This document shows, in pieces, positions 13,911-59,209 of a DNA stretch of 64,000 nt; within the stretch, counting starts at the first letter, position 1, and every line of letters begins with the position of its first letter. The translations under genes were made by a program, and so were the position numbers. The notes under the pieces were generated by a model. It did no database searches. It was not told the DNA's origin and saw only the letters and a list, made by a program, of their open reading frames with translations. The DNA is from Penicillus capitatus (taxonomy: Eukaryota; Plantae; Chlorophyta). The DNA is taken from positions 973,101 to 1,037,100 of the forward strand of contig OZ287696.1 of NCBI GenBank assembly GCA_965649825.1, read 5' to 3'.

Positions 13911-15031
13911 TAAGTAGTCGATCTCCATTCCCGCTGTGTTGAATGCGAATTACGATAGGACGACAGAACACTAAATCTCGATCCCTTCCTGACTGTTGCG
14001 AATGTTTTCAGGACGCTTTTCATTGTAAAGCGCGTGTCTGCCGGTCGTTGATGTCTGGAATCTAGAGGTCTCTTCTTCGCATTCGCTTCCCCCGACAGAT
14101 AAGGAGGACGCCGGCTCCGATTATTTACTGCCGACTAGAGTTCCGAAATTCGCTAAGCACCTCGCAAGCACAGCGTTCCGTTACAGACCTAAACACGACG
14201 ACGTTATCGCGGTTGCGTCTTCAGCGATGCAAGACAGCGTCTGTTACAACATAAACATGTCACACATGAAGAAAGACTTAGGTGGTGGAGCTGTTGAACA
14301 TTTTCCATCGTCAGACAACTTCCTACATATCATAGATAATTGTATCTCCGACTTTGCTGGTAAACTACAGAGCAACGATGAGGTCACTGTTGTGAGTATG
14401 ATGTTACAGATTTCGACTCCCTTGTCGTCGACATTCAACACGCCTTTTCAGAACAGAGAACAGGGTCTCGACGATGTTAATAAATCCGTTCTTTCGCACG
14501 CATTCGTGATCCTTTAGACAATGCACTCTTGGAGCACCGTAACTCCTCCAGTTTGATGCTTTCCGAAGATGGACGCCAGACAGAAGAAACAGTCCGCTTC
14601 TCAAGATACGAGCATCGAAGCTACAGAACCCAGATTCGAGATCCACTGCATTTGCATTGTTGACAGCGCGCTGAGTGTTAATAGTTGCTTGATATTCTCT
14701 ATGCCTTCGTCCTTGTCCGTGACTTTGGAGTCACACTTCGGCTTATGGGTTTCGCCTCTTTGTTCTTGTCGACCTCAATCTCGATGACGGAGATGAGCTT
14801 CCGGTCACTCCTTCCGCCAAAGACCCACAACGCAGAAGGCAACCGGTTCTTCTGCGAGCACTCAACGGGACGGCGCTCGCGCGTCGACGTTCTCGAAGAA
14901 GGCCGCCGTCGATGGGCGATATTCTCGACATCAGTCGACTCCGCAAGGTCGGACGCCGCATGAATGTTGCTTGCATTTGATAGACCAGACGACTCCATCT
15001 GGACGCTCGAATTTCTGTCAGTCATCGTCAT
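13890..15031 (-). pseudogene. Copy 3 of unknown 'gene X', decayed
   Basis: 13890-14200 aligns to 9400-9700 (ccttcctgactgttgc, gttccgaaa.tc..caagcac.tcgca). It contains in-frame stops. Confidence 0.4.
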
Positions 15032-15043
15032 CGTCGCCGCTTC

Positions 15044-16321
15044 ATGGATCCAATCGACGCCGAGACAGAGAACGAGGCCGCAGCCCTGAGACCCTCGAAG
15101 GGGACCAATGCCTCGCCACCGCAGACCGAGCCCTTTCTCGGCAACTTTCGTTCGCCTCCGACCTCCGATAAAAACGACCTTCAGAGTCGTCTGTGGCGTT
15201 GCAGAGCGCGTCTCGACGCGACGCGGGACGCTTCCAGGGCAGCCTCTGGATCTCCCAGAAGACTACCGGCCGCTCAAGGAGCCTGGAATGATGACCCTTT
15301 TGGACTTTGAGATCGGCAAGCCATTGGCGGAAGGCAAGTTCGGACACGTTTACGTCGCCCGGGAACGCAAGTCCAAATTCATCGTCGCCCTCAAGGTGGT
15401 CATGAAAGAGAGGCCGTCTTGCTGCTAAGTCTGTGTTGTGTTCAGCGTATGGGCAAGCAGTACATGGTAGCACACAAGGCTGAGTGCCAACTGCGACGCG
15501 AGGTGGAGATCCAGTCACGGATGAAGCACCCACACGTCATCCAACTTTACACCTGGTTCCATGACAAGGCACTTACCGTTCCGCTCTCGTCCTACCGATA
15601 ACAGAGGAATGGACAGGACTCTGTCTACCTCGTTTTGGAGTACGCTCCGAAGGGCGATGTGTTCTCGGATCTCAGAAGGAATCGAACGTTCGGTCAGAGA
15701 AAGGCGGCTAAGTGAGCTGACTAGATATGAGGGGTGTGATGTCACTGGATGGATATCTGTGCACAGTTACATAATACAGGTATGCAGCGCACTGGTATTC
15801 TGCAAGGCCCAGCACGTCATCCATCGAGATCTGAAGCTGGAAAACCTGCTGATCGATGCACACGGGGAAGTGAAGCTGAGCGACTTTGGATGGTCGATCC
15901 ACTACAAGAAGTCTAAGAGGATGACGATGTGTGGCACCGTGGACTATCTGGCGCCGGAATTGGTGGAGAGGCGACCCTACAGCAACGAGGTGGACGCATG
16001 GGCTCTTGGCGTGCTGCTGTACGAGTTCCTCTACGGAAAAGCTCCATTCGCAGATCACACTCCACAATGGACTTACCACAGGATCCGCAAGGTTGACATC
16101 CGCTTTCCACAGGAACCCAAGGTCGATGTGGACGGCCAGGATCTGATCTCGAAGGTGTGTTTTTCCAAGAGATGAACAGATATCGATAGCTGCGTGTTCA
16201 GCTGCTGTGCAGGAACCAGGAAGAGAGAATGCAGCTCGAATGTGTCTTCGACCACCCATGGGTTGAAAGACATGCGGATCCATCACGGCTTCTACGACTC
16301 AAGGATCTCTCGAAGTCTTAA
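15044..16321 (+). CDS. AUR: Aurora-family Ser/Thr kinase, multi-exon, 5' end uncertain
   Basis: [65 protein letters not shown] and DHPWV. One GC-AG intron (15569-15616). Confidence 0.92.
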
Positions 16322-16486
16322 AAAGCGACAAGCCGCAAGAATCCATCGAAGACATCTACACGCAGTCTGCACACCAGAGATCCTGTTGTACTGAGACACG
16401 AACGAAACATCATCTTGTGACATGTGTTATTAAAGAAAGGTAGCGTCCGACAACAGACAGATAACGTTAACGCCTTTGATCGACTT

Positions 16487-19400
16487 TCATTCGGCTTCCT
16501 CTGTCGGTGGAGTTTCCGACATCAGGGATCGCCACCATCCAGGACGCCTCTCGACGTTGTACTTCTTCAACAGCTCATCAATGTCTACGGAGTCCTTCGA
16601 ATCACTCCCATCGCTTGCAGCCGCGTCATCATCCCTTGCTGTCTCCGATGGATCATGCATCAGTTCCTCCAAAGAATGTGATGTACGCGAAGAGTGATGC
16701 GGAGCAGACGTGTCCTCTAGGTGAGTCGAGTGACCAGTAGGGACGTCAGAGTAGAGTATAGGGGAAGGACTTGGACTAACGGGTAGAGTCGTCGTGAAGT
16801 GCCACTTCTCTTTAGTGTCTTTGCTTCCAAGGCAGTCCGAGGAAACCCGCTGGACTGAGATATCTCCCTCGGTATCGAAGATCGAGTCATCCGATGTTTC
16901 GCCATCCGCGTCGCCTGCTGGTAGTTCTGTGACGTTGTCGTCCGTCGGGTCATCTCGATGTATCACAGCTTCTGTGTCTGAAGTCAAGTCAGCTGTCTTT
17001 GAGATGTCAAGCATGAAATCGTCATCGCAGTAGAAAGGGTCGCAAATCACAGCTGCAGATGCCGGGGCAGAAGGCTCGATGACGGAACGGTTATGCTGAT
17101 CGAAATCTGTCGATTGCATCAAGAGGTCACAGAGTGCATCGATGCTGTCCGATCGTGGACTGAGGAGGTCCTCGTTCATTCCGCTGACGACAACATAGTT
17201 CTCATCGTCCGAACACGTTTGGAGGGGAATCGACGCTCCGGAGGTCTTCTCCGTACTTCCTGCTTGGCGGTTGTGCAAACCGCAGGTGTCATCAAAGATC
17301 TGTGCTTCAGCATCTAGTAGCCGCACGTCGATCTCCAGTTCGCCAGTCTTCTGCAATTGGCTGCTTAATATTCCCATCGGGCCACACACTCGACCGAATC
17401 TTAGAAGACATGACATCTCCAGATGCATCTCGCCATCGGTGCTTTCTGTTATGCCGCTTTCGGAGACGGACAGAACCTGAGGGCAAGCAGAAAGGTATGT
17501 ATAGGCCAATTCCATGCAGAAAGCTGCTGTACTTTGAAAACAAGTGACTGGTCGAACCACTCCTCTCTTCTCTCCTCGGGCACCATAAGAGAGAGTTGCA
17601 AAGAAACGGGAACACTTGCCGAAGCACGATCTGCCACGTGGACAACCGCACTCCTGTATTCTTTGTCAGCCTGTCTTTCCAAGGAACAGGTGACTACGTG
17701 GCCTGAAAGAAGGCGAAGGAAAATCAGAAGACACAGCCTTAGTCTCAGATGGCGTACGATGCATCGGTGTCGATAGCTTTAACGCAAGAACACGGATCTG
17801 TACAATCTCTTTGGATGTCGGTTCCTTGGTGATCGACGCACTGTCTTCTTGACATTGGACAGACCCTTCTGCTTTCTTGTCGTCTGCCTTTGCTAATTCG
17901 TTGGACTTCTTCGAAGCTGTTGCTCTGTTGGATGGACCAATGTCTGTTTGTGCGGCTCCACGTCCACTCTGTTCCGTTTCTTTGCTCGGTTGTTGTCGCA
18001 AACGCTGTTCTCTTGCCGGCATTCTCGCCGAGTGATCTTCATGTATGTACTTCATCTGTGGTGTCGCTTGTCTTTCTGTGTTCCTCCAGAAGCTCATTTC
18101 CATAGATCCTTTTGCTTCGCCGTCCAAACCAGTGATTGTATACACAGCATGCTTAGGCGTAGAATCTCCTGATGTCATAGGAATGCCAATCTTAACAATA
18201 CCCACGATGCATCCTGCGAAGGAGAACATGTAACACGATCGGGTTTTGCGGAGTGAACCTTTTGCGTTTTTCTTGTAGTTTGACCAAACTTCAACAACGA
18301 GATGAACAACAGCAGTTGTCGCTTCAAATGGGATGAGAAGCCCGGTCTCGTTCTGTAAGTCTTCATGTTCTAACCTCTTGGCAAAGGAGTTTGTCTTGAC
18401 AATGACACACGGTTCTGAACACTCGGCTTCCATATGCAACCGATGCAGGATGAGAGCAATCCAATTCACAGCCGCCTTTGCACCCACAGGCTTTCCAGCA
18501 CAGGCAGGGAGTCCACTTTTGCCTCCCCGTACACCGCTTGGACGATGCAGATCGCTTGCAGAAACGCAGGAATATCTGGATACGGGAGGAGGAGGATATT
18601 CTTGGAGCAGAAGGGCATCACATAAGACATCCTCTACGAGGACGTCTGGATCATCAGATAATCCCAATCCTCTTCGGCCACGATTTGAAATCAGTGATAG
18701 AGTTCCCTGATGACTCAAGACCAATGGCAATGTTCCAGGTGTGTCTTCTAGTGCTCTCTGTGAAGCTTGGAGTGTCTGAGCGCACGTCGACATATCCCTG
18801 ACAATTCCTTGACACTTTGATATTAAACCATCTAGTGCGGCTATTATGTTTTCTTGCTGACTCAGTGCTAAACAGAGACATTGCTTTTCAGAATTGGAAT
18901 TGGCTCTAAAGGTTTACCCTTCGGGGCACGTTCGATCGCATCGGTGTTTTTGGTCGCCGAAGAGGTGGCTGTATTCATGACATTCTGCAGGACATCGAGC
19001 TTTGTCGATTTCTCTTTCTGAGGCGGATTGGCCGATGGATTATCCACTGCAGGTGGCTCCGTCTGATTACTTTCTCCGGAGGTCGATTGAGCACTATCGT
19101 GTTGTGTTCTATGCTCCGAAGATGAGCGATCTTGCGTGAGGGAAGTGACGTCTTCGTTGTCAGCCCTTTGTTCCGCCGTTCGTCGTCCCTGTTCTGTAGT
19201 CAACGCATCTGAGGCATCTCTTTCGGCTGGGCGGTCGTAAAGGGTATTGGAGAGGAGTGCAGGATCGGATGGCAGTCTTCGTTGTGTTGGTTTGATTTTC
19301 AACACAGTTCGTATCTCCTAGACAAAAGCGCTCGGCTCCATGACAAGACAGGTATTATGCTGACTTCGAGGGTCCATGCATTCTGTTTGGGAAGCTCCAA

Positions 19401-20501
19401 GAAAAGAGTAACGAGTAAACAGCATTCATCGAATGCAATGCAGTCTGGAGCGCATCGTCTCAAATGCCCAATCTATGAAGCAAGATAGACAGGAGTTCGT
19501 AAACGCAAGGTATCATCATTTACCAATATCTTGGCATTGATTTCTGAATAGCGTTGTTGTTGATCTGGCTCGATTCTCGTCAAATCTCGGTATACAGCTT
19601 CGAATCTCAAAGTGACTGCCACTTCCATTTTGATGCCACTGCGGACACTCTGCATGGCTCGTTTGGCATTCCTGTGTCACACAGGAAGTTCCACACACGT
19701 GTAGAAACGATGGCTCAACTTGAATCTCTGATTGAATTCCGCAAAGGTAAAAATGCGTGATCCTTTCCAGTCGATCAAATCCCAGAACTGATTACGATGC
19801 ACAACCGGCACCGCACGATCCACATAACGATCAATTAGCGAAGTCATGTCTGCCACAGGCGTATTGAGTTTGTTACAGAAACGATAGACATCGATCAAAC
19901 GAATCCCTTGACTGCACAAACAAACATCGCACATGCACAATCCCCGCGGTACATACTTGGTCATTGTCTTCTCCAGAACATCAAAGACATCGGCAATGGA
20001 ATCAATCACTGTATCCGGGAGTCGATTGGTCACAACGCGTCGCCTTTTGTTGTTATCCATGACTATCCGTGAGGTTGGGACATCGGCCCAACACGCGATG
20101 TCGAGTGTACCCTTGACCTCTCTGAATTCATCGACCACGGATATTTTCTTAGCCAGGGCAGCACTTTGGGATTCGGGAAGGGGTAGAGCCATGTCGACGG
20201 TAGCTTTCCATACCACACTGCGTTTGCCCACTTCGAGTAAGAGGCCTTTTGCTTGACGGAGATACTCTTCGAAGAGCAACCAGTCCGTTACCACCGGACA
20301 AACGACTGTGCAGGATTCTCCTGCTTTCGGCACGCGGATGTGCGGGATGTCGTTTGTTGGTAGTCCCCATAGAACAATGCGGATCGTGTCAAATTGCTTT
20401 CCTTCCTCGAGAACGCAGTTTTTGAGGTGAATGTTGAAATAACCTTGAAGGCTGCCGACGACGCGCGGCGGCAGATTTGGTCCGCGAACGACAGCTTCCA
20501 T
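16487..20501 (-). CDS. C2CD3: C2CD3-like multi-C2-domain (centriolar) protein, multi-exon
   Basis: The N-terminus LPPRVVGSLQGYF...IRIVLWG...FEEYLRQAKGLLLEV...GTLDI resembles the C2CD3 N-terminal C2 domain. A further C2-like block lies in ORF 17666-18793. Joining ORFs 19677-20513, 18868-19305, 17666-18793 and 16487-17560 into one gene is inferred. Confidence 0.6.
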
Positions 20502-22800
20502 TCGACCAGTCAAATGAAACTGAGTGAGCGTGGCGCTGAATCCGCAAAGTCAGGCAGGCATTAACACAACGCCATCTACAATAAGAGGTAAATGATCCGC
20601 TCTACTATCTCCCCGGAAAACTGGGGAAGATCGGCGTATTCCATTCCTAGCAGAACATGCACTGCTGCTGTCAGATCGCGTTGGATTGTACCAACGAAGT
20701 GGAAGCTTGAAATGACGCATGCGACATCCGCTGCATAACAAGCCAAGAGAGAAGAACGTTGCCGGAATGCGATCTCCGTTAAACAGTCTATTCGCGACCC
20801 CTGTCGATCGCTTGTTTTGATGAGGGAGGGTGATGACTACGCCTAGATCTGATCGTCGATCGTAGAATTCGACGCTGTCGAGCGTCTCCAAAGGCGGGCC
20901 GAGAAGGGCTAGATTTCTGCACGATCGTTCAAACGTGCCGTCGTTGTCGACAGAACTCCGATCGGCGTCGTTTGTCGTCGCGATCGCAATGATTTATGCG
21001 ATCGTCTTCGAAAAAACGGTATGTAGTCGTCATATTGCTGCACAAGGCCTCGCGACAGCGGAAACGATTAATCGGAAGTAAGGACTGGATGATGATCGGA
21101 TGTACGATGTTAGATCGCTAGACTTTGAACGATGTATCGGCGAATCCTGTATATCCTCGTCGTACTCAGAGATTATCGATACTGCGATCAATCGTTTCAC
21201 CACGCTTTGCACACTTCAAAGAAAATGCTTGATAGCTGAAGATTCCGATTTCGAAGTCTAGCAAAACGCCGAACTGGTCAACAAACTTGATAACTGAGAT
21301 CTCTACACTGGGTCCGGAGATGTCGATTCACCTGTCCTTTGGTGTAAACTTGAGTACAATAACGGCCAAAGAGAATCTGCTCCTCGTCACATTGATCTCG
21401 TCGCGATACCACGAGAAGGTCGCGAAAAAAGAAAATTCCCTGCTACACAGAAAGGGAGCGTGAATCAGACAGCGATCAAGTCAACATTAAGAAGTGCAAA
21501 AACATCGAGTAAATTGAGCAGGTCATCATAACCAGAATCTTTTACAATTGAGAAGATTTCGGAAGCGAAACTGTTCTGCGCCGCTACCAAATCGGGCAGA
21601 AACGAACGCCGCTACGAATCGGCGGCCTCGATAACGATCGAATCGCCCGTGTCAACTAATGTGAGAAAACACAACAATCGATGACGCCCGATTCGCAAAA
21701 TTAAGATAAACCAGATAGATCGACAACGACTGGCAACAGGTGAACAAATCGAAATCGACGATCATCAATCGGACTCGTAGATATCAAACACGTTGAACTC
21801 GCTTAACACTGATCAACTAGAATCTCATCTCATTCGCCTCGCTGTGCCCATAGTCAATCCATACTTTGTTGTTCATGACAAAGAGTTTGATTATCAAGTT
21901 GATAAAGATAAGGGACACTGCACTTATCTCCAAATAACTAATAGCTCATTGACAAAGTTAAAGACATAAAAACTATCTTTTCTTCTTCCGATCATGTCGC
22001 TGTCGCAATATTTGACAAGAACATTTGACATTGTTGAAGTAGGCAGATCTGTCTACTATGGTGGTATCATTGTGAGAGTGATCAAACATGCTCTATTAGT
22101 AAATCGTACGTAGATCCAAACATATGACAGACGGTCGATCATCATCGATCGTCGATTAAGCGCGTTCGATCATCATCGATCATCAGCTATCGACTGTTTT
22201 GAGATTTAAGGCGACACCGATGTTTACATTTTTCGTCTAAGACAATTGTCGCTCATCATTACGATTGTATTACTCTTGGCCGCATCTTTAGTGGCGACGA
22301 ACTTTTGTCGATGAATATGAGCGGCTTCGATCAATTTACGTAGGCAACGATCGGGGTCGTAAAACTGGATTTCTATGCAGTACATGAAAACTACATATCT
22401 GAAAGCTACCTAACTGCCGGACACATCTTATGATCTGTAAGGTAACAACAGACGCCATCGATCAACGAACAGACGTTCGGGAATGCCTTTCTGGTTCAAG
22501 ATACAGAGGGGTATGTGTTGTCTGGCATTCTAATGTCTGCTAGTTCCGTGTGCCTGTCCTAATCGATGCTACATCTGTATACGCGAAGGACAATTTTTTA
22601 CGGATAGAGATCGACGTCATCAAGCGCGAGATTCGACAACAGAATTCACACAATCACGAACACTCGACACAGCCAACTTATATTTCTTAAGTGACTACAT
22701 AGAGATAGAACACCTCTCGGATCGTGAGCCCATGGTTGTCACATATCAATGCCATCATTGCTAGCCTCCATGCATCGGTTATCCATTCGACATGTTTCGC

Positions 22801-24735
22801 TCATGCATTTGTCCCTTCGTCCGAGGAATTCTCGTCAACACGCATTCCTCTCGTGATAAACCGTCTGCGTCGCAGAAAGCGTCTGAGTTCTGGATGGAAA
22901 TCTCTGACGATTGGCCGAACAGTGAGCGTGCGATCCGGCAGAGTCGCCACGATGGTATCCCCATCCTTCACTTCCAAATCTCGGCCATACTTTGTAAACA
23001 CCTTTCGCATCGATCTGAGCTTCAACTTTCTTCCCACCGTCAGATTGCAGCTGCGTTTCAGGATATAGACAAACCAATTAAGCTGCTGAAAATTGTCAGC
23101 CAGTGCATAGTACTCCAGCAATCCAATCGTCAGCCGATCGTAATACCGCACGATGTGCTCGACAGGCCAATGTGTAATGTAACCATTTCCAAAGGCTGTC
23201 CATGCGTTTCTTTTGGAAAACTTCACGAATTCATTCGCCAAGAAACACTCACGCAACTGAAGGGTTGGAATGTACAGCAGCGGGCGTAGCAGCAGTCTGC
23301 TTGTTTCGGCGATGGACGCCGGCATGTCAAAGGGAAGAAATTCGCGGCCGATCTCGTATCCAAGAAATGCTGCTCGATTCGAAGTGTCTCTGTGATTCGA
23401 GGCATGATGCACTTGGATACTTACGATCGTTGTATCCATTCGCATTCGTCGGAGTTGTGTGATGACGTCTGCCGCGACAGCGTTCGCTTCTGCCTCGTTG
23501 CCTCTGAGACCAATAAAGAATGACGCTCCACAACGGACAAAGCGCAGCATTCGTTCACTCGGCGGAGTAAAGGGTGCTGCGATTGGCCACTTGTGTGGTT
23601 TCTTGAAATCTGAGTAGGCATTTCGGTATATCTCCAGCCACTTGTCGAGGGTATCCAAGTAACAGTTGAGTAGGACAGGAGTGATGCCCATCTCTTTGGG
23701 TACAGCAACGAAGCTCTCAGGTTCAAGACCGAAGGTGCTGATGTACCCAATGTCAAGCACTTTGTACAGAAGCCGTTCGAAATGGGGATCCTGGATGCAT
23801 TGACAGGCAGCCTTTACCATTTCGAATCCTTTGAACTGCTGCAAGGCTACCGTCAAATCGACCACGATGTACCAGTCCATTCCAAGGATGTGGTTTCGGA
23901 GATTCCTCAGGGCGACTTGCCGACCACCTCCTGGACGAAACCCAAACGAAAAGCTGGAGAAACGCGGTTCGTAGATGGCATCCAACACCAATCGAATGCT
24001 GTCCAGCACGATCTCATCACGCGGAGACGGAATCGCATAGCGAACTTTCCTGCCGCTCGGTAATCGAAAAGATTGAAACTGTTCTGGCACGAAGGAAAAA
24101 TCTGGCGATCGAAGAAGTTTGCCCAGTTCGATGATCCATCTCTGATTGATGTCTTCTGTCTGAAGTCGACGTTGACGGGTCATGTACTTTGACAAACGGC
24201 TCACGCGTCGCTTTCTTTCCATGACACCACGAAAGAGGACAGACTCGTGCGCCAGCATACGCAGCAGGAAGTTGTTCGGCAGCTTGGGATGGTCTCTGTT
24301 CTTTCGAAAGAGGTCTTCCAACACAGGTACTCCGCAGAGAGGGGACGGAATCGATGCGTCGTCATCTGGCGCCGATGGCGTTGCGGAAATCGACGGGTGT
24401 TCGAATCGATCGAAGGGCGATACGGGCGCGGTCGATTGTGTGAGATGAAGATGGACAGCAAGGTTGTCGTGTCGCGGAAATTCCTGTAGCAAATCTTGCA
24501 ACTCATCGCCGAGAGTAGGCCCCTTGGCAAAGGCTTGTTTATGAAAAGCTGCGTCTCTCAGTACTGAGCGTAAACCGCACAGAAGTACAAGTTGACGTCG
24601 AGTGCTTCCAGATCGATGACGCAACATGAGAGGCCTTCGCCTACCGTAGAACGCGATTTGTGTCGTACATGTTAAAGGTATGCGTCGAAGAGACGTTTGT
24701 ACGGAACTGCACGCAAGAGGAGCCATCGTCCCCAT
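22801..24735 (-). CDS. Nuclear-encoded group II intron maturase-like protein (degenerate RT plus domain X, no endonuclease domain) with putative organellar targeting peptide
   Basis: Single 644-aa ORF with RT motifs YAIPSPRDEIV, IYEPRFSSFSFGFRPG, ITPVLLNCYLDTLD, FVRCGASFFIG (YADD lost) and FLGY. Domain X reads YYALADNFQQLNWFVYILKRSCNLTVGRKLKLRSMRKVFTKYG. The first 60 aa contain no D/E. Confidence 0.9.
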   Translation of the reverse strand: MGTMAPLACSSVQTSLRRIPLTCTTQIAFYGRRRPLMLRHRSGSTRRQLVLLCGLRSVLRDAAFHKQAFAKGPTLGDELQDLLQEFPRHDNLAVHLHLTQSTAPVSPFDRFEHPSISATPSAPDDDASIPSPLCGVPVLEDLFRKNRDHPKLPNNFLLRMLAHESVLFRGVMERKRRVSRLSKYMTRQRRLQTEDINQRWIIELGKLLRSPDFSFVPEQFQSFRLPSGRKVRYAIPSPRDEIVLDSIRLVLDAIYEPRFSSFSFGFRPGGGRQVALRNLRNHILGMDWYIVVDLTVALQQFKGFEMVKAACQCIQDPHFERLLYKVLDIGYISTFGLEPESFVAVPKEMGITPVLLNCYLDTLDKWLEIYRNAYSDFKKPHKWPIAAPFTPPSERMLRFVRCGASFFIGLRGNEAEANAVAADVITQLRRMRMDTTIVSIQVHHASNHRDTSNRAAFLGYEIGREFLPFDMPASIAETSRLLLRPLLYIPTLQLRECFLANEFVKFSKRNAWTAFGNGYITHWPVEHIVRYYDRLTIGLLEYYALADNFQQLNWFVYILKRSCNLTVGRKLKLRSMRKVFTKYGRDLEVKDGDTIVATLPDRTLTVRPIVRDFHPELRRFLRRRRFITRGMRVDENSSDEGTNA

Positions 24736-24989
24736 GCCAATTCCATCAGACGATATTCGAATTCTGTGATGCCTTGAGTGTCGTCGATGTTACATTTGGC
24801 GTCAGACAGACCGCATGTCGATCATGATCGATCGAGACTTTGTTCTTTTTCATCCGACGCTACGCCTCGGACAAAAAATGACGTTCGAAGATAGAGCAAG
24901 CATGATTTGACAGATGGGATGCCTTCATCGAGGTGGCGAAGAGTGCATCAGGGTGTTTTGAGCGAAGCCTTTTCTGATGCGTAATGTCC

Positions 24990-25472
24990 GAATGGAAACA
25001 ACACTTTGGACGGAGCTCTGTCAAGTGACGGACAGATTGGAGAGATTCCGGAATTGGGGAGTACCGCAGATCACTGGGAGTGTCTCGAACAACACCAGCT
25101 GAATGTCTTTCATCCTAACACGCTTTTCGGAGAATGCGATTCGCTCATCTTCATACCTGACGAAAATGGACTTCTGGGCAAACGATTGCGGTAAATCTGA
25201 TAGACGTGTTGGATGAAGAGGCTAAAGAACCGCATGCCCAACTATGTATACTGAGAGACGTCGTCGCGGCTTTAGTGTTACCGAAACCTTTTTCTGGTAT
25301 CCACGGCACACTCGATCTTGGGGTGCTTTCCCCGACGGCTATTCTCTTTTCGAGGAGAGATTGTGATTGGACATTAGAAAGGCTGCGACAGATGCAGACG
25401 TCGCTGACGTCCGTTGGAATGAACATACCTGTCGTTGCGGTTCGAGATGAGGTTCCTCAGATGACGAAACAT
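24990..25472 (-). CDS. Possible small unknown spliced gene
   Basis: ATG at 25472 (MFRHLRNLISNRND), followed by a clean GTATGT...CGCAG intron into ORF 25151-25426. The downstream structure and 3' end are unresolved. Confidence 0.2.
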
Positions 25473-25642
25473 TGACAGAAATCACACAAAAAGATGTTTA
25501 AAAGCCCCGTCTATCCATGACAGACGAAGCTTAAAATCGAATGTCTTCCAAAAAGGATGTCAAAATCGAGATCAAGCACAGGACATCATGGGATCTGCCA
25601 GCTACGCCTCTCTCGACGCTCGAATCGATCCTGTTCTCCATT

Positions 25643-26229
25643 TCAACCTCTGCCGAAGAATGACCACTTCTTCTGAGCAGGTTGCTTCGCAACGGGTTGT
25701 TTCACAGGAGGCTTCTTTGCAACGGGTTGTTTCACAGGAGGCTTCTTTGCAACGGGTTGTTTCACAGGAGGCTTCTTCGCAAAAAGAGGTTTCTTCGGAG
25801 GTGCTTTTCTGCCAACCGGCCTTGGAGCCGATCTTGGAGTGGCGGGTGCTGCTTTCCCGTCTTGCATCTTGGCAAGCTGCCGACTCGCTGGACCCGTGAT
25901 ATTGAACAGCACCCAGGCAATAGCAGGAACAAATAGAAACAGGACTGCTCCTAAACGTGTGTCTCCAGCTGCTATTGTCGCGAATTCTTGAGCGGCCTCG
26001 ACGGGCTGCGATGCTAATAGTGTCGATGAGACGGCAAGTCCGGCAATAGCCAACGGCGCCTACATAACGCACAGGTCTCACCACTTCACGGATCAAACCC
26101 GCACACATCAACGCCGGCTTCATTTTTGTGGTTTTGGATCCGCAGGGTATCTCGAACGCGGAGTGGCGTCAAACATGGGGCCGTTCTCAACGAGGTGCCA
26201 AACACGGATCTCTGCGTCACAGCCTTCAT
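25643..26229 (-). CDS. psbY: Photosystem II subunit PsbY precursor with Lys/Pro-rich C-terminal tail
   Basis: Transit peptide MKAVTQRSVFGTSLRTAP..., one 47-bp intron, a thylakoid signal ending VEA, and the PsbY core DTRLGAVLFLFVPAIAWVLFNITGPASRQLAKM. Confidence 0.85.
25684..25780. repeat. 30-bp coding tandem repeat x3 (KKPPVKQPVA) in PsbY
   Basis: gcttc(tt)tgcaacgggttgtttcacaggag repeated three times, nearly perfectly. Confidence 0.9.
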
Positions 26230-26843
26230 TTTCGATGTCTTGATACGAGCTCAAATCGAACGTGGCTAGACGAGAAAGCGACAGCGTTCGTTTCGCAGAT
26301 CCAGATCGACCCGTTAACGGATCATTATGTCCATTGACGAGATGTCACCGTCTCATGGACTAGAACCTGTTTAGCGCCCATTCTCTGCAGATTCCTGTAT
26401 TTCTATCGTCCTGCATACGTTTCATGCTAGATGTTAGAGATACGTGTCGATTTCTCACTGACCGTTATGTGAGAAGTGTGATGTGTTGCACGGATTGGAA
26501 TGCCGTGGAGAGATCAGGACGGTTTTGTCAGGTACGCTATCGCGGCGGCGTCGAATTTCGTAGAGTCTCTCCAATCGTCGATGTACCGTTGTCGAGTGCC
26601 CGTCTTGCGCTAAATGCTCTCAATCTGAGTCCACAGGCGTGTGGTCTATTACAAGATTGACATTATTGTCGCACGTGTGCTTGTCTGGCTCCAATTCTCT
26701 GCCTGAGGCCGAAGCAGTATTCGACGCCAGTCCCTCCGAAGCGACGGACGCGTGCACCTTCCGAACGGAAGAGGTATCCGCGGCGTACGATACAAACACC
26801 TCGCCCTAGACGACGCGAGATGCGTTATCGGTTAAACGCCGCG

Positions 26844-29618
26844 ATGGAAGGACCCTTAACGGACAGGCGACCGAATTCTTAGTGTATCGAACGTCCATGT
26901 GTGATGCAGTGGGCATTGGAGTGTCGGAGAGATGCCTCGTCACGATAGCCGTGGAACAAAAAAGCGAAAGCTGAAACGAGGCGGCGCTCGTTGCGGTAGG
27001 CGCCACGTCGGATGTGTTTTCTTGAGGAATCGAATGTCTAGGCGACGCTCTAAAACAACGCCTCGAGCAGCTGCGCACCGTTCCTTCCGAAAAGCACGTG
27101 GTCGGGCAGCGTGTCTGGGTGAAAGTGACATCCTACTGTGACTGGCCTGGAATTATTTGGAGCATTGACCTATGTCTAAAGAAGATCGTGCCTGAGCTCA
27201 TCAACTCCTACACACAAGGCATGGAATCGGTACATCGCTGATGATCGCATGATGGATGTGGTCATCTGTAGGGAGCATTCTAGTGAGGTTCTATGGGGAT
27301 CAAAGTAGTATGTTTTGCAAGAAATCCACGATCAAATTGATCGAGGATGAATACGAGCGACGTTACCGGGCATTGAAGTATTGGGGAAAGCAGGACAAGA
27401 AGCGTGATCAGAAGGCGACATGGGCACTGGAGGACCTCGATACTTCTTTGGCTGACTGTGAGGCCGAGGTCCAGAGAATGCTTCAGCTGCAGACCCACGT
27501 TCTGGGAAACAAGAGCGGCGATTGTATCCTCTGTGCTCTCTGTGAAGAGGACGGTGCTCAGATGAAGTGCAGAGTCTGTGAACGCTATCTCCATCCGCTG
27601 TGTTTGACACCTGCTGCCCTGACGCCAGATGACATTCCTGACGGCGGCCAATGGTTATGTCCCTCGTGTGGAGAAGAAAACCACGTAAGCACGAATGTCT
27701 ATGCATAACATACAAGACATGGCTTTCTCAGGTGCATCGGGATCCGGCAGATGTCGAAGAGGAAAAGATCGAGAGAATGGGGTTGACACCGGACTGGATC
27801 ATTCATGCAGGAGCTTTTCGCGTGTTTCAGCTCCAGGAACCTACACCCGACTTTCCTTACATCCGTGGACTCCTTGACCCATGCACCAACAGCAAGATTG
27901 CTCCCAATATTCCTGCAGAACGTTTGTTTGATAAGAACGATGATGGATTGAAGCTTTCCAATAAATGGAATGGTTACCACATTGTTCTCAACCCAGACTT
28001 CAAGGCTCATGTACTCGACGCTCTTTTTCGTTGTTCTGGTCTGTGAGTGCTGTGTGTGGATGTAGATCCAATGGAGATTTGTGAATCGAGCCATCGATGA
28101 AGTGGAGAATGATTCTGTGCCAGGTGTCCTGCTCATCTGTCGCAATTCGACGGACACCGCGTATTTTCAACGATTGATGCCCTATCCGAGAGTTCTCCTA
28201 CGCCGGAACAGCATTCGATTCAAGGACTATGACAAAACCCCAATCGGATTTGGGATTGTGGTGTTTTGCATTATTAAGCATGACTACCACACAGTAACGA
28301 AGAGATTCATGGAGAATTTTGCACCCTTCGGTGAACCCAATATCGTTATTGACAAGTGTAAGCGCATGCATGTATGATGTGACAGATGATGATGATCTCT
28401 ATGTATGCATCATAGCGTGGTTGCTGAGTGCATCCTTTGAGTCTCTGTTAAGCCGGCTGTATCAGTACGCAAATAGACACCATCGTGATCACTGGATACA
28501 ATGCTGTCAGTGCGAAAAGTGGAGAATCGTGTCGTACGAGGCTCTTCTCAATGCAAAAAACATGAACTGGGAATGCAAAGATCTCAAGTGCGATTCTGTC
28601 ATTGCGTTTTTCTGTGTGTATGACGCGTGGGTGGATGTACAGTCCACCGTACTCAAGCTGTGCCACCATCCAGACGAAGGCAGAATTGCATGGGGCGCGC
28701 TACGCTGTGTTATCAGAGGATAAAGGTTTCTTCGATGAGGCGCTGCCGGCAACATCACCCCATCAGTTTCAACCGGAGGGCTGCTCGGCAGACAGTCCTA
28801 TGGACGAACTGCCGCCCGTTCTGTCTCGGCTCCTTCAGACGCATGCCATTACTGGAATGGATACGGCCGGACAGAATTCTCAATGGCAGGCTTGTTCATA
28901 TACGCTGTCTGTCTCCGAAGGCATTCTTCCCGAAGGGAATGGCAAGATGCCGACAAAGCATCAGCTCAAAGCACTCAGTAATGTACTGACATCCAAGATC
29001 ACACAGTGTGCCCCCAATGTGAGACTGCCAAAGGAGGGATTCGTTATCAAGGCAGTGCTCGTGGACAGCGTCACATACAATACTGTCCTGCGCTGGATAC
29101 AACATCTGACAGTGCATTCTCCCATCAAGAATACAACACCCGTCAAGCGTTCGCTAGAGCACAGCCCCAATCACGGAATCCCCAAAAAAGCGAAACTCTT
29201 GTCCAGTAGTAGCCTTCGCAAGAAGATCAAGGCTCAGAATGGCGGTCAAGTCAAGTCTAGTCTAGAATTGGAGCGCGAGCTGAACAAGGCAGCGCATCGC
29301 CGAATGATGGATTATATGTGTTTAGAGTCTGGTCACAAGGAGAGCCTTTCGATGCAGAAGGCGGTGGCCCTTCAGGAAGCAGAGGGCGTGTTGGAAATGG
29401 CACGCGAACAGTTGAAGAACAAATGCTTGGATGAAGAACGCGTCATCGGCGAGAGAATAAAACTGGATACAGAACTCATGAAAAAGCGTCGTACATCCGA
29501 TGAAGAATACCTTCATGTAGAAGACACTCTAAGATCACTTCAATCTCAATTAGAACAGGTTCATGGAAGACAATCTTCCTCCATGCCATCAAACCTGGAG
29601 GCTGCGCAAGTTTCCTAA
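26844..29618 (+). CDS. Chromatin-reader-fused DNA N6-adenine methyltransferase (PWWP + PHD + phage-type Dam + zf-CW + coiled coil), start uncertain
   Basis: PWWP: RVWVKVTSYCDWPGII...VRFYGD. PHD: CALC...CRVCERYLHPLC...WLCPSC. Dam: LTPDWI...LDPC...DDGLKLSNKWNG...VLNPDF...RAIDE...LLICRNSTDTAYFQ. CW: WIQCCQCEKWR...WEC. Confidence 0.8.
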
Positions 29619-29639
29619 ATTCTTTGCCTCGCTGGGGGT

Positions 29640-30025
29640 TTAAGGATTATGAGAGCTCCAAAGAGCAGACTGTGTAGAAATTTTTGCTACGACTATTAGA
29701 ACGCATTTCTCCGCATTCATGTGCAATATCGTCGATCTCAATTGCCGTGTGTAGGGTGGTGATGTATGTGTCTTCAGTTCTTGAAATTCTGCTCTACCGC
29801 CCGTGCCACTATTGCACACACAGCTTACCCAAAAGATAGCCTCTGCACACGTCTGGACGGACGATGCCTTCCTCTCCGCGATATTGGAATGGCTGGACTC
29901 GAACAGGAAGATAGCAAAGGGCATACATATGCAACTGCTCTATCTGTGGAATTCAGTATCTTCTCCAACAGTCTAGCGTTTTCGTCACGAATTTCAAGGC
30001 AGCAAGGAGGAGCGGGGAAGCTCAT
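29640..30025 (-). CDS. Small spliced protein, weakly TFIIS-central-domain-like
   Basis: Intron-like segments join MSFPAPPCC... to AEAIFW...PYTRQLRSTILHM. The family call is weak. Confidence 0.2.
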
Positions 30026-30121
30026 GTTGGGTCATCGTCGTCTCTCGATCGACCGATCGATTGAATCGTCGGAAGCAAAACGGACGATTCTTACAATTGC
30101 TGCATCGCCACAGCTATCTGT

Positions 30122-31205
30122 TTACGCTCTCAATTTCGCCAGACTGATTCTCAGTGCTGGACCCATTGTCGAACAGAGGTAACACGTCTTCCAATAACCC
30201 CCCTTTGCACCAGTTGGCCTGTTAGCATCGATCGACACCTGCAGTCAACCTCAATCCTCAGCACTGACCAATGCTCCATACAACAATCCAACCTGAACGG
30301 CCTTGAGATTCTCGTAGATATCTTTAGCGCCAAAAGAAGCTTTGCCAATCGGAATGTGCAGGTTCCCATGCTTATCCAATCTGTACTCCACTTTCCCTCC
30401 CTTGAAATCTTTGATGGTCTAGAAACAGGATCTCGGAGTGGCACGACGTGAACGAGGGCGCATTGCATTGGCGAGATCTGTTGTCACAGTACCAGCTTTT
30501 GGATTGGGCATCAATCCCCTTGGACCCAGCACACGACCCAACTTCGCCACCTTGGGCATCATGTCTGGCGTGGCAATGGCCTTGTCAAAATCTATGAATC
30601 CTTCAGCGATCTCCGAAATCAATAGCTCTCCGCCAACAATATCCGCTCCGGCATCTTTGGCCTCCTGTTCCTTATCGCCAGGGCACAGAACAGCAATCCG
30701 CAGTTCCTTCCCTGTCCCCTTGGGCAAAGTGACTGCACGATCATGCCTCTGCAACATGGACGGATTGAGGAGACGTCTGACCTGTGGCTCTGAGTTGCTG
30801 ATCGGCGTAACGCGGATCCAAGTTCGTTTTGCCATGAAGCTCCACGGTCTCATCGAACTTCGCCGATGCCATCTCTTTGAGTGCATCGATCGCCTCGATG
30901 GGCGATAACTCTCCTGTCGGTTTGTTATTATCGAGTCCTTTGAATCGCCGCGATCGTTTCTTTGGGGACACGGCGACAGCGGGTTGCGATTTCTTGCGAG
31001 GGACGACGCTATCTGCGACGCCCGCCCCTTCCCCTTCGATCGAATCTTCAGCCGCTTCCGTCGCTGCCGCGTACACTCTCCATTGCCTCGGTCGCGTGGA
31101 TACCCATATCGCGTTACTTCGCACTGCCCGTCCGACAGAGCGTGTTGTCAGCGGTCGATGGCAGGGCGCGACGGAAACGCATGCGAGGCGAGCGCTGCGC
31201 GTCAT
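30122..31205 (-). CDS. rpl1: Plastid 50S ribosomal protein L1
   Basis: Transit peptide, KFDETVELH...[38 protein letters not shown] and STMGP. Three introns, one of them GC-AG. Confidence 0.95.
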
Positions 31206-31300
31206 CGTAATATTGATGATGATGATGGCGATGTTCATCCATCCAATCAACGCAATACGATTCCGTCCCATTCAACAACACCATTCCCGTCTGATCTCTG

Positions 31301-31893
31301 TCAATAGCGGCCGGCCCACAGTCCCTCCTCGCGCAACTCTTCCCAACGCTCGATCTGCGATTGCCGATAGACACCATCATCAAAAAGGGAAAGCGAAATG
31401 GAGCGACGGACCCATTCATCTGGACAAATGGATTCGTAACAGCGTTTGTAGAAGATGCATTCTTCACTGTCCTCGTCTTTCTCCAACTTGCATCTGCACA
31501 GGAGCACGAGCCAAGGTGAGATGACAGGTCGTCGCGGATCGATCGACTTGTAGAATTCGTTGTAACGTGTGTAACAAGTTCTGGCTTGGTTCACTGAACG
31601 AAAGCGCGGATCGATCGGAGGCGACCAGAACTGCAAAGCGGAATACGCGAATGTCGATCGAGCACACGTCACGATTGGCAACGACTTTTGGTTTCTTTGG
31701 ATAAGTGCGTGGAGTTTCCGCTGCCTCGGCTTCGGTTTCGACCTCGGCCTCCTGCACCGGGTTCTCTGCTGTCTCGGGGGTCGAATCCGTCGGCGGCTCC
31801 TAAACGCGGAAACCTTGTCGTGTGTCGCGTCACGTGTGCAGTGAGCGAAACCGCGACGGCGGTCGTATCACAGTGAGAGAGCGTGCTTCCCAT
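31301..31893 (-). CDS. COX6B: Cytochrome c oxidase subunit 6b, start uncertain
   Basis: PIDPRF..VNQARTCYTRYNEF.KC...EC...Y.SICPDEW.ERWEELREEG.WAG (twin CX9C-type motif). Confidence 0.9.
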
Positions 31894-31909
31894 CGTCAAC
31901 AATCGAGAA

Positions 31910-32798
31910 ATGCTCGTCATTCTGCGGCATCGTGGCGTAAATGACGACGACCTTGTGCATTGCCAGAGCGCCGAATGCGAATCCTCTGCACGTCGATTCC
32001 TCAAGGCGCGCCAATCGATCGGTAACTTGCGCTGCGATACCAGGTCCTGTAGACAGCACGGCCTCGCTGCGACACCGATGCGTTGCTCTGTAGAAAGCGA
32101 TGTGAAGGTTAAAGTGGGACGTGGTCCTCGCAACAGTCGATTCGTTTTTGCCAGTTTGGACGTCCGAGCGCCAATCGAAGTTCTCTGGACGAGTCTGACA
32201 GACTATGATCACCTGGACGAGTTCATTCCGAGTCTAGCTGAGAACGAATGTCTACAACGCAGACCCACAGGAGCCATTCTGCGTCAAGCACAGCTCCTCT
32301 CTGTATATATCCCTGTCCTCTGATCATCGCCTCTCTGTAGGTCGGACAACAGAACATCGCTCTGGGTGTCAAGTTCTGTGCTTCCGTCGTGCTGAAGATC
32401 GGTGAACATTTTGAAGGACTGAGCCGTGATCTGTGCTGGTCGGCGGCAAACGGAGTGGAATGGGATGAAGAGCGATGGTTTCCAGTTCCTGGACGCATCG
32501 AAGGTCCAGCACCTCGAGATATCACCTTTGAGTTGATTCGGGGCGATTTTCAGGTATGCGTCCAAGTTTGGATCACGTCTTGGGTAGTGCGTGCCATGGG
32601 GTATAGGCATTCAAGGGACTTTGGAGAATGCAGGAAGATGCACGGCGACCAGACATGTCCAAGTTGTCTTACAGTGTCTTTATTCGGCCTCAGTTATGGC
32701 TTCCAGTTGGACTGATTCAGGGACGTATCTCTACAGAAGCTAAGAACAATCTAAAAGCTGTGAAACGACACGCTGAACGAAACGCTGTAGTTTTATAA
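31910..32798 (+). CDS. START/polyketide-cyclase-like (SRPBCC) protein, likely plastid-targeted
   Basis: APIEVLWTSLTDYDHLDEFIPSL, QVGQQNIALG.KF, GDFQAFKGLWRM and LWLPVGLIQGRI. One GC-AG intron. Confidence 0.8.
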
Positions 32799-33411
32799 GC
32801 TAATAAAAAAACAGTGTCAACAACAGACAGACACAGCTGTAAACAGAGTCTCCGTGTGGAGTGTCTCGAATGATGGCGGTCCATTTGTGATCAAAGGTTC
32901 AGGAATGTAGTAGCATCGGAATGAGCAGGGAGGAAGAGATGGACTCTCGTTAGTTTGAAGAGCCTTTGCGTCTCTTGTAGTTAATTTAAGATTAGGTACA
33001 GATCGACAAACTGGATGTCTCACGGAATCAAATCGTCTCTTTCATTGAGTGACCTTGATTGAATCAGAGCAAATGCACTTAACTCTTTCATAGAGAATTG
33101 TCTGTATAAACAAGCAAATCCAGCATCGCCATAATTCAGGATGAACACACAAGAGACAGACGACTCACAGCACAAAACCAGAAACCGTTTGGGCACTTGT
33201 GTACCGCTCGGTGGTACTACATAGGCCGCTCAAAAGAATGATCACCCTACGAGAAAGATAATCGAGCAGGAACTCACAGTCTTTGCGATCATGCAGCTGA
33301 TGAGGCCGTATGTCGTCTTGTGACCCCAGCCCCGACTAATACCAGTTACCTACATCCATCATCACCACCGCCATCAACCACATTCCTGTCATGTCTTCAG
33401 GGCGTCGGTGC

Positions 33412-34532
33412 TTACAATGTCATTTCGTCCAGATCATCGCAGGAGGGTGTCCTACGAAGCTTTTCCATGTTGTGTGGCTCGGGTTTATTGTTCATGACTG
33501 CTTCAATCTTGTCTTCCTTCGACGCAATGGCTGGTGTTGGTTTACAATAGGTGTTGTGAAGCACGTCAAAATCTGCTTTGGCCCATGCCGTCAGCGCTAA
33601 TTTGACATCAAATGTGCTGGAAAATTCTTGCGTAAACTTGATTTCGCCAGGGCCTCTGTACTGAGAGTGGACACGTCGATCATTTTCCCAACGGACATCC
33701 CATCCGTCCGACGGATTGTGGACGACAAAGTGGGCTTTGCCTTGATTTATGGTGATCTCAACAACTGTCCCCTTGACAACAGGGCATCTAAAAGGAAGCT
33801 GGCTTCCGACAGTTATTTGCGAGCAAAAGCCAACGCAGAGAACGTTGTCCGTTTCAGCGAGGCACTTGTGCAATGCTTTTCTCCTCTCCTACACGCACCC
33901 AACCCTTCCCATCAGACACCAACCACCACCTATCCACCATCGTACACGATAGACACACCTGTAGCGATACAGGAACGACACCAAATTCGACAGCAGTGTT
34001 GCCTTTGACACGGAGCTTCCATTGCATAATACTTTGCCGACTGCTCGAGAGATCTGAAACGAGCATTTTTGGCCCAAGTCCAACGAGTTTGACTTGTTTT
34101 AAGCGGTTTGAGTTTTGATGTTTCTCAAACGCAAAACCCTCTCTTTCCCCCAACTCCATATCGAACCCCACTCCAGCGCTTTCGTAGTAAAGCAGCTCTT
34201 TCCATGATGGCTCCCTGCTCCACAGCAAAACGTCTTTCGAGAGGGTATGTTCGTTCGTTCACTTACCTCCACGAATAGTCCGGTCGCGCTCCATACTGTC
34301 GTTCATAGGCATCGCGTGCCGCCTGTTCTACGAGTCGCATGCCGCTGCCCGGGTGTCTCAGTCGCATGGCGCGTGACACGAGTTCAATGTGGACCATACT
34401 CTTCGGGTCGAGTTTACTCAAGATACTGACCAATACGTCGACGGGAAGGGCGAGAAGAGGGAAGACATTTTCCGCCGGTGTGTTCTCTTCAGATGTCTCC
34501 CCCATCGAAGATGAGAACCTTAAGGTTGCCAT
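33412..34532 (-). CDS. F-box protein with SPRY-like C-terminal region
   Basis: F-box LLALPVDVLVSILSKLDPKSM; WKLRVKGNTAVEFGVVP is SPRY-like. Confidence 0.65.
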
Positions 34533-34745
34533 GACCGAAGGCAAACGTCTTACGTGTTACGACGAAGCCGAAAGCGAAGGCGCACTGACGGCGAACGAGA
34601 TAGCAAACGACTGGCGACGGTAACTCAGACGAAAAGGTAAGGAAATAAGAGATGCTTGTAGCGTGCGCTTAAAGGAGTTTCAAAGCAGACGGCGCTTCTG
34701 AACAAAAGACGATGGCCGAGGTATCGACATTAAACCTCATTGCTC

Positions 34746-57900: not shown

Positions 57901-58988
57901 CGTTTCGCTGGACGACGTCGGTGTTCACATTTCGAGTGACCTCTTCGAAACTGGATGCATCGACAAACGATTCCTGGATCTCGAGGGCATCGCCTTCTTC
58001 GCATGTGTTGCTCAATCGCATTTCGATGACGATATCGCGATGCTCTTGCATAAACAAGTCACCCAGATATAACACCGTACCGTCATCTGTCTCGTCCACT
58101 TTACCTCCACTGCGGACGGCCGTCACTTTTGCATTGCCTGTCGGTTTTATCCAGTAATGCATGTTGAATGCCACCGAGGTCAGCAGCCCTACACCCAAGT
58201 CACTTCACATCTGCGCAGGCCGCGGCCGTCGTCTTACCGCCGAGCGCGGAACCGAATGCCTTAGGAACGTCGACTTCATCGGAGAGAATATACAAGACGC
58301 CTTTGCCGACGTCGGCGATTTCGTTGAGCAAATCGAAATCGAGGTCTTCGCCAAATCCGAAGGTGTAAATCGCAACGGTCTCTTTTGCCGCGGCTACCAT
58401 CCGCTGAACCGCGGCCGTAATGTGATTCGAGTCTCTCTCGCCGCGCGTCGGTCTGCCATCGGTGAAAACGAACACGACGCGAACATAGTTCCCCTGTTCA
58501 TCCGACGTCTGCTGTTGGATGCCGGCCTGGATGCCAGCCAATAGGTTCGTTAGACCTTCTGCTGTCGTCGCATTGATTTCTTTCTGAATCTCCGTCTTCG
58601 TTTCGTCCGTCAATTCTTGAAGCGGCGTCAATTCCTGAGCTTTGGTGCTGAAGATAACGGAACCGAATTTGTGTCCGACCGTTTCGCGCGAGAGTCGCTC
58701 AACGAGATAGTTATTCGTCGCCTGAAGCAGCTGGAGCTTCGACTCAACCATAGAACCGGACACATCCATGACGGACGTCAGCGACAGCACGGGACGCGCG
58801 TCGCGATTTCCGGCGGCAGCGATGCGGAGAACCGCCGTCGCCTTTTGGGCCTCACAGCTGTAGTCCGTATACTCATACTCAAGCGATGTTTTAATAGGGG
58901 GTTCGTCATTCGCTGCCAAACTGGCTGTCCATAAAAGAAGGCAGGCGATGTTCAGCAAAAGTAAGCAGGGCAGAAACGCAAAAGACAT
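51990..58988 (-). CDS. ~2276-aa type I membrane protein with five tandem VWA modules
   Basis: Signal peptide MSFAFLPCLLLLNIACLLLWTASLA. Three introns (49, 55 and 64 bp) join the three large ORFs in frame. VWA beta1 motifs MDVSGSM, LDKSGSM, VDGSETV, LDASATA and LDAVDYT. C-terminal hydrophobic segment. Confidence 0.8.
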
Positions 58989-59209
58989 GATGAAGAATGC
59001 TGAGACCGGTGTAATCTGACCCGATTTTATATCCACTTAATGTCGCCATTATACATGGCTGCGTGCATTTTCGGCCGTTCTGTCTGTCGCGCCTGTTGGC
59101 TCATCCGCGACTTTTTTATGTTTCGAATCTCGACCGTATCTCTTTTGCCTTCATTGAGTAGTGACGTCCCTCTCGCGTCTCGCTCCCCATCTCTGTTCGC
59201 GCTTCGAAC

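Follow-up and report, generated by a model that had tools for sequence, protein, structure and literature searches.

A 64-kb stretch of Penicillus capitatus DNA (hereafter the window) carries on its minus strand, at 22801-24735, a gene encoding a maturase-like protein of 644 amino acids (aa) that is related to the proteins encoded within group II introns. The gene is a real, free-standing nuclear gene, it has lost its mobility, it evolves under purifying selection and it is conserved across several genomes. We favour, with a probability of roughly 0.65, a role in which its product would be imported into an organelle and would act there as a trans-acting maturase on group II introns lacking an open reading frame (ORF).

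The gene consists of a single unbroken ORF of 644 codons running from ATG to TGA (stop codon at 22801-22803), exactly as claimed in the initial annotation of this DNA, and the ORFs overlapping 22801-24735 on the other strand or in other frames are all short and show no sign of being genes. Of the two Pfam families that the annotation had named for comparison, Intron_maturas2 (PF01348, domain X) was the sole family found in the 644-aa protein, matching aa 500-594 with an E-value of 1.9e-14 (54.3 bits against a cut-off of 20.8 bits); RVT_1 (PF00078) was not reported by the same scan. The NCBIfam model group_II_RT_mat (TIGR04416) matched aa 226-463 with 61.6 bits, a score so far under its 300-bit cut-off that the reverse transcriptase (RT) is evidently degenerate. 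The top match among PDB sequences, obtained with phmmer, is LtrA (5g2x_C, E=1e-28), which aligns in two stretches covering aa 212-368 (RT1-4) and aa 380-573 (RT5-X). The AlphaFold2 (AF2) model, for which 32 sequences were aligned, has high confidence over aa 130-606, with a predicted local distance difference test score (pLDDT) of about 90 in the core and domain X, and is disordered over aa 1-125 and 607-644. Searched with Foldseek, this model returned intron-bound LtrA (8h2h_D) as its best match (E=3e-19, 538 columns), followed by other group II RTs. These data delimit two structured regions: a catalytically dead RT-like fingers/palm region spanning RT0-RT7 (aa 134-480; 23296-24336, minus strand) and domain X, or thumb, the maturase domain proper (aa 481-606, including LKRSCNLTVGRKLKLRSMRKVFTKYGRDL; 22918-23295, minus strand). 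The latter is as well preserved as initially described, and its sequence fits the consensus ILK.SCALTLASKL.L.T..KVF.KFG of its relatives. A tblastn search of the 64-kb window with five maturases revealed no second copy, the gene occupying a single locus.

The loss of RT chemistry was traced through a column-wise motif comparison in a 153-sequence alignment of the window protein and its relatives. The RT5 block (FVRCGASFFIG, aa 399-409; 23509-23541, minus strand) aligns column by column with the YxRYADDFxIG of intact relatives, and CGAS (23521-23532) stands in it for the catalytic YADD, the substitution that the initial annotation had read from the ORF. At the same position the four complete orthologues have CGSS, CGSS, YAGT and HGVN, and the intact relatives YADD. 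In the RT3 block (WYIVVDLTVALQQF, aa 288-301; 23833-23874, minus strand) the CFD of the consensus W.IEGDI.KCFD is replaced in the window protein, and the Asp itself is gone in three orthologues. The window family has also lost the RT1 motif TLDG and carries a deletion that shortens the stretch between RT4 and RT5, a deletion not found in other maturases. Side by side with these losses, we observed that the DD of YADD is missing in 44 of the 153 closest maturase homologues, several protist mitochondrial cox1-intron ORFs included, and that these protist ORFs also carry Q-rich residues in place of the RT3 CFD. RT-dead maturases are thus, to judge from the alignment, common among the organellar relatives.

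Both the alignment and the AF2 model place a short, basic, disordered C-terminal tail (aa 607-644, PELRRFLRRRRFITR...; 22804-22917, minus strand) where a DNA-binding/endonuclease (D/En) region would otherwise follow domain X. Pfam reported no HNH family in the window protein, whose alignment stops ahead of the relatives' endonuclease block, and the HNH/En block CxxCG..HH..NRKQ..C..CH present in relatives P0009, P0016, P0010 and P0003 has no counterpart in it (AI2M-like_HNH was itself reported by Pfam in P0009 only). No Rfam family reached its gathering score anywhere in the 64-kb window, and nothing related to group II RNA appeared at E<=10 in the 8.5 kb around the ORF (19500-28000). The two absences on which the initial annotation had relied, of an endonuclease after domain X and of a flanking group II intron RNA, were therefore both recovered by these searches. 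Judged by its motifs, the window protein is neither a reverse transcriptase nor mobile.

The maturase gene is under purifying selection. An independent assembly (L001, a 797-kb contig) is collinear with window positions 14935-34603 at 82-89% DNA identity, and an orthologue with 83% aa identity (P0001) sits at the matching place. Between the two genes, the nonsynonymous (dN) and synonymous (dS) distances are 0.094 and 0.411, respectively, and the resulting dN/dS of 0.23 (bootstrap 95% interval 0.17-0.30) departs from the neutral value that the initial annotation had named as evidence against its reading. Calculated by part, the ratio is 0.11 in RT1-4, 0.15 in domain X, 0.22 in aa 76-133 and 0.32 in aa 37-75. 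When 1.84 billion cluster representatives were searched exhaustively with HMMER, four further family clusters emerged (P0002, 62% identity; P0006/P0156, 56%; P0008, a fragment, 52%; and P0007, 41%), making five clusters above 40% identity in all, with every other match at about 30% or less. Eukaryotic genes (among them VDE, Tra1, aldehyde dehydrogenases, Mnd1 and CTLH) surround those for P0002, P0156 and P0007, whose ORFs have stayed intact although identity is down to 41-62% and synonymous sites are saturated; in total, the maturase ORF is intact in five genomes.

The orthologue fragment with 52% aa identity was observed in a short AT-rich contig (L092; Logan SRR23287135, 1469 bp, 26.5% GC). 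A 46-nt GT-AG intron interrupts it, a second intron probably follows the codons for ...NYL, and the sequence ends just ahead of the YADD position. The description of the gene as intronless therefore stands for this species but does not extend to the AT-rich orthologue. Since this 26.5% GC contig carries an orthologue, the nuclear genomes that harbour the family range in GC content from about 26% to 51%.

That the maturase is nuclear follows from the collinear 797-kb contig, the intron-bearing neighbours, the neighbour-like base composition and the nuclear-type loci of the orthologues. The upstream neighbour is a PsbY exon on the same strand (ORF 25643-26053; PF06298, E=2.6e-9) and the downstream neighbour is C2CD3 (ORF 19677-20513; C2CD3_N, PF25339), with a PHD-finger gene, a plastid-type rpL1, a MutS-domain gene and a VWA-domain gene elsewhere in the window. 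The genes of the window occupy both strands, the contig carrying the window sequence (P0237) measures 844,522 bp, and GT-AG introns are found in neighbouring genes (49 nt in rpL1 and 64 nt in the VWA gene). The GC content of the maturase ORF is 0.51, and 0.54 at third codon positions (GC3), like that of neighbouring coding ORFs. The PsbY and C2CD3 flanks, the intron-bearing neighbours and the similar GC content had all been described in the initial annotation, and all were confirmed. Its impression that the gene is not a fresh insertion of mitochondrial or plastid DNA (NUMT or NUPT) agrees with the fact that the nearest organellar relatives are only about 30% identical.

In sequence terms, the maturase belongs to the mitochondrial-like lineage of group II intron proteins, because its nearest relatives are mitochondrial cox1-intron ORFs and its domain X signature fits their consensus, as the style of this domain had initially suggested. 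The closest intact relative (P0009) is 31% identical, combines RVT_1 and domain X with an AI2M-like HNH, and is a cox1-intron ORF from a fungal mitochondrial genome that also harbours VAR1 and LAGLIDADG ORFs. Gene-rich mitochondrial genomes of protists supply two more close relatives, P0077 and P0073, each a cox1-intron ORF with a degenerate RT. The proposed descent from a protein of a mitochondrial-lineage group II intron, with loss of mobility, is supported.

We inferred a neighbour-joining (NJ) distance tree from 153 sequences and 462 columns, with 100 bootstraps. The resulting tree recovers the five-member window family as monophyletic (100/100), groups P0022 with P0025 (100/100) and places both groups as sisters (81/100). 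This topology suggests that the window family and P0022/P0025 define a wider algal nuclear clade; weighing against the grouping, the method is distance-based and the two lineages are both degenerate, so that long-branch attraction may have drawn them together. P0025 is a nuclear gene model of 1047 aa from Ostreobium quekettii (EukProt EP00803, scf_116:65647-71826), and P0022 lies on an intron-rich contig, where it adjoins DEAD-helicase exons. In the P0025 model, DUF1818 (aa 134-212) is joined to the RT-dead maturase (aa 525-1023), and the model may be a fusion of two adjacent genes made by an annotation pipeline. It was also observed that P0007 and P0022 derive from adjacent run accessions (L003, SRR23272282, and L007, SRR23272284, respectively); one organism, or close relatives, may carry both types of paralogue.

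The region preceding the RT presents a more complex picture. The initial annotation had described an extension of about 130 aa ahead of the RT, and this is what the data show: the maturase core (RT0) begins near aa 125-134, and the AF2 model shows no structure over aa 1-125. It had further described the first 60 residues as rich in Arg, Ser, Thr and Leu and free of Asp and Glu, and the lack of acidic residues is correct, the first of them in the ORF being residue 61. Codons 1-36 (MGTMAPLACSS...RRRPL; 24628-24735, minus strand), however, are open in this genome only and are not coding in L001, which has a TGA at the codon aligned with Q26, a frame shift farther upstream and only 10 open codons before the conserved ATG. 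These codons are either a lineage-specific N-terminal extension or a 5' leader and, since they are not conserved as coding in L001, the acid-free 60-residue peptide may in part be leader.

The conserved start is M37, whose ATG is shared by the window and L001 together with the motif MLRHRSGS.RRQLVLLC. It opens a disordered, presequence-like segment (aa 37-75, MLRHRSGSTRRQLVLLCGLRSVLRD...; 24511-24627, minus strand) that we consider a candidate targeting peptide. Counted from M37, the first 24 residues contain no acidic residue and the first 40 contain eight Arg or Lys and a single Asp or Glu, a composition that resembles an organellar presequence and makes targeting plausible. In a hydrophobic-moment scan, the highest-scoring stretches of 18 residues all begin at aa 71-75, in the acidic ELQDLLQEF, and none falls in aa 37-60; an amphipathic presequence thus gains no support. 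Between the segment and the core, the alignment of five orthologues defines a family-specific N-terminal region (aa 76-133; 24337-24510, minus strand) with the motif ELQDLLQEFPRHDNL and with ...IPSPLCGVPVLEDLF leading into RT0, in which L.D.F.E.PEFD.L and IPSPL.GVP.LE.LF are common to the five proteins. In P0002 and P0156 the open frame has no ATG ahead of the L.D.F.E.PEFD.L motif, and both genes probably carry an upstream exon, although no upstream exon was identified by eye for the L002 and L004 orthologues.

Taken together, these data suggest a pathway in which the gene of a mitochondrial-lineage group II intron protein would have moved to the nucleus and, after the transfer, would have lost its intron RNA, its RT chemistry (with YADD replaced by CGAS, and RT1 and RT3 degraded) and its HNH endonuclease, keeping the RNA-binding fingers/palm scaffold and the thumb, or domain X. 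Cytosolic translation, probably beginning at the conserved M37, would be followed by import of the protein into an organelle through its Arg-rich N-terminus. There it may bind group II intron RNAs that have no maturase of their own and stabilise their catalytic fold, so that splicing would proceed in trans. The mitochondrion is slightly favoured as the target organelle from the ancestry of the protein and the look of its presequence, ancestry by itself arguing only weakly for this destination; for the plastid, which the initial annotation had raised as a possibility, the data speak neither for nor against. A trans-acting maturase role is favoured because the protein combines a type-I architecture with the strongest selection on RT1-4 and domain X, and these are the parts that touch intron RNA in LtrA. 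Several observations weigh against this reading: conservation across the family does not extend to the N-terminus, the start codon is uncertain, and the family is narrow, about 15 billion proteins having yielded members from only six to seven genomes or samples. Furthermore, a search of the JGI metagenomes with the family profile returned no member, only ordinary group II RTs with 24-32% identity.

The poor conservation of the N-terminus and the uncertain start would also fit a domesticated maturase scaffold with a job other than splicing, either as an organellar RNA chaperone or processing factor or as a cytosolic or nuclear RNA-binding protein, its conservation then reflecting RNA binding. 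The family-specific N-terminal motif and the RT4-RT5 deletion, both foreign to other maturases, point the same way, and RT-derived proteins have been recruited elsewhere, as in the case of Prp8 (PMC8393795). We nevertheless regard this explanation as unlikely, given that selection is strongest on the RT fingers and domain X, which in LtrA contact the intron RNA, that the predicted fold superposes on intron-bound LtrA, and that all characterised free-standing RT-dead maturases (nMAT1-4, MatK and MatR) act on group II introns (PMC3927076). The same function would be retained if the family were instead orthologous to the land-plant nMAT lineage and inherited from a common green ancestor, a scenario to which the identity of its architecture with that of type-I nMATs (RT-dead, domain X kept, no En; PMC3927076) lends some appeal. 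It appears distinctly improbable, since the literature places both nMAT transfers within land plants (PMC3927076, PMC10012718), the HMMER search separates five clusters above 40% identity from a remainder at about 30% or less, and the nearest neighbours of the family in the NJ tree are the algal nuclear group of P0022 and Ostreobium P0025.

Homology to organellar intron ORFs is also what a decaying NUMT or NUPT, an assembly chimera or a still-mobile retroelement would present, yet we give such explanations almost no credence: the 644 codons are intact with a dN/dS of 0.23, the locus and its neighbours recur in the independent assembly L001, and orthologues occupy other nuclear loci. The sequence is moreover nuclear-like in composition and just about 30% identical to its closest organellar relative, and it has no intron RNA, YADD or En and a single copy in the window. 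The trans-acting maturase reading admits a broader form, which we put forward tentatively and consider rather doubtful: the window family and the Ostreobium/P0022 group could represent an old green-algal nuclear clade of RT-dead maturases, independent of the nMATs and serving ORF-less group II introns of organelles, possibly of plastids. In a stranger variant, group II introns would be absent from the host organelles, and the protein would have taken on a new RNA function.

The neighbouring genes also bear on the nature of the host. The plastid rpL1 of the window is 64-70% identical to green-lineage proteins and, in an NJ tree computed with no bootstrap, falls among chlorophytes, with trebouxiophytes as the nearest named taxa and streptophytes and cyanobacteria outside. 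A nuclear PsbY fits a green-type plastid. A dinoflagellate host, suggested by the GC values and by an intron donor other than GT, was considered and rejected: no relic of the dinoflagellate spliced leader (DinoSL) was found in the window, the genes occupy both strands, the search with rpL1 returned no named Symbiodiniaceae protein, and rpL1 falls among chlorophytes. Besides its 49-nt GT-AG intron, the rpL1 gene itself (30419-31271, minus strand; L001 3112-3899) probably has another intron, roughly 50 nt long and with a GC donor. Its ORF starts with an in-frame hydrophobic stretch, preceding a transit-peptide-like segment and kept in L001 with an in-frame 3-nt indel, which could be a signal peptide, and thereby a hint of a complex plastid, or a 5' leader. 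The end of the PsbY ORF (25685-25782, minus strand) encodes a Lys/Pro-rich tail in which a 30-nt unit (PPVKQPVAKK) is repeated in tandem 3.3 times with 97% identity, and this tail gives weak low-complexity matches in Pfam to HC2 and extensin-like families. Farther along the minus strand, 49353-49991 contains an ORF with MutS domain V (E=6.5e-20), identifying a MutS-family gene, and 51990-59036 holds three long ORFs (918, 1137 and 278 aa) separated by tiny gaps, with the VWA domain in the middle one. The gap at 54747-54784 falls inside the 64-nt GT-AG intron of this gene, and introns of very small size seem to be the rule in this compact genome.

The characterised mobile-intron proteins that have turned into host-encoded trans splicing factors are the land-plant nuclear maturases only, and their domestication is a step often taken as a model of spliceosome origin. 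If our reading is true, the same domestication was repeated outside land plants, in a chlorophyte-type alga, and algal group II introns that are trans-spliced or contain no ORF would have, in the window gene, a specific candidate for their missing splicing factor. Should the old algal clade prove true as well, it would constitute a second, convergent origin of intron-derived, host-encoded splicing factors. The concept of maturase domestication is left unchanged by the finding, the function being inferred and the family taxonomically narrow. Reviews present nuclear maturases for plants only (PMC4424553, PMC8393795), and algal nuclear maturases have been speculated on or mentioned in passing as an explanation of ORF-less introns (PMC5088586; bioRxiv 10.1101/2021.09.24.461685). 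In Ostreobium, all plastid group II introns are without intron-encoded proteins (PMC5888179).

Among known systems, the window gene is, by its predicted domains, an instance in an alga of the type-I nMAT architecture. The four nMATs are nuclear, free-standing genes whose products have a conserved domain X, a deviant RT and an En that is lost (type I) or defective (type II); they bear N-terminal mitochondrial signals and are needed for the splicing of mitochondrial group II introns (PMC3927076). nMAT1/2 derive from a mitochondrial maturase like Marchantia mat-Mpo1 and nMAT3/4 from one like mat-cobi84, both transfers having occurred within land plants (PMC3927076, PMC10012718), and on this literature an algal origin independent of the nMATs is likely. 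With nMAT1 and nMAT2 in particular, the window gene shares its free-standing nuclear state, its mitochondrial-lineage origin, the retention of domain X, a degenerate RT, the lack of D/En and an N-terminal extension (PMC3927076), a likeness of architecture for which the nMAT side is taken from the literature. In contrast to these embryophyte genes, its host is a chlorophyte-type alga, its family has an N-terminal motif of its own and a shorter RT4-RT5 linker, and its import and splicing role are predicted.

LtrA and the yeast aI1/aI2-type cox1-intron ORFs provide the best match in sequence and fold, aligning over RT0-RT7 and the thumb, but the window protein is not intron-encoded, has CGAS for YADD, has lost the RT1 and RT3 motifs and lacks an HNH. 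MatK and MatR resemble it in their conserved domain X, degenerate RT, absent En and presumed trans action on several introns (PMC3927076); they are encoded in organelles, within the trnK and nad1 introns, whereas the window gene is nuclear and has no surrounding intron. Finally, Ostreobium P0025 and P0022/P0278 are likewise RT-dead (YGAN or YGGN), without En and in a nuclear-type context, and they share with the window family the motif H/N-W..EIV[KR][FY][FY]D and the loss of TLDG in RT1. They differ from it in being only 23-27% identical to it, in having an RVT_1 that Pfam still finds and in being without the N-terminal motif that characterises the window family.

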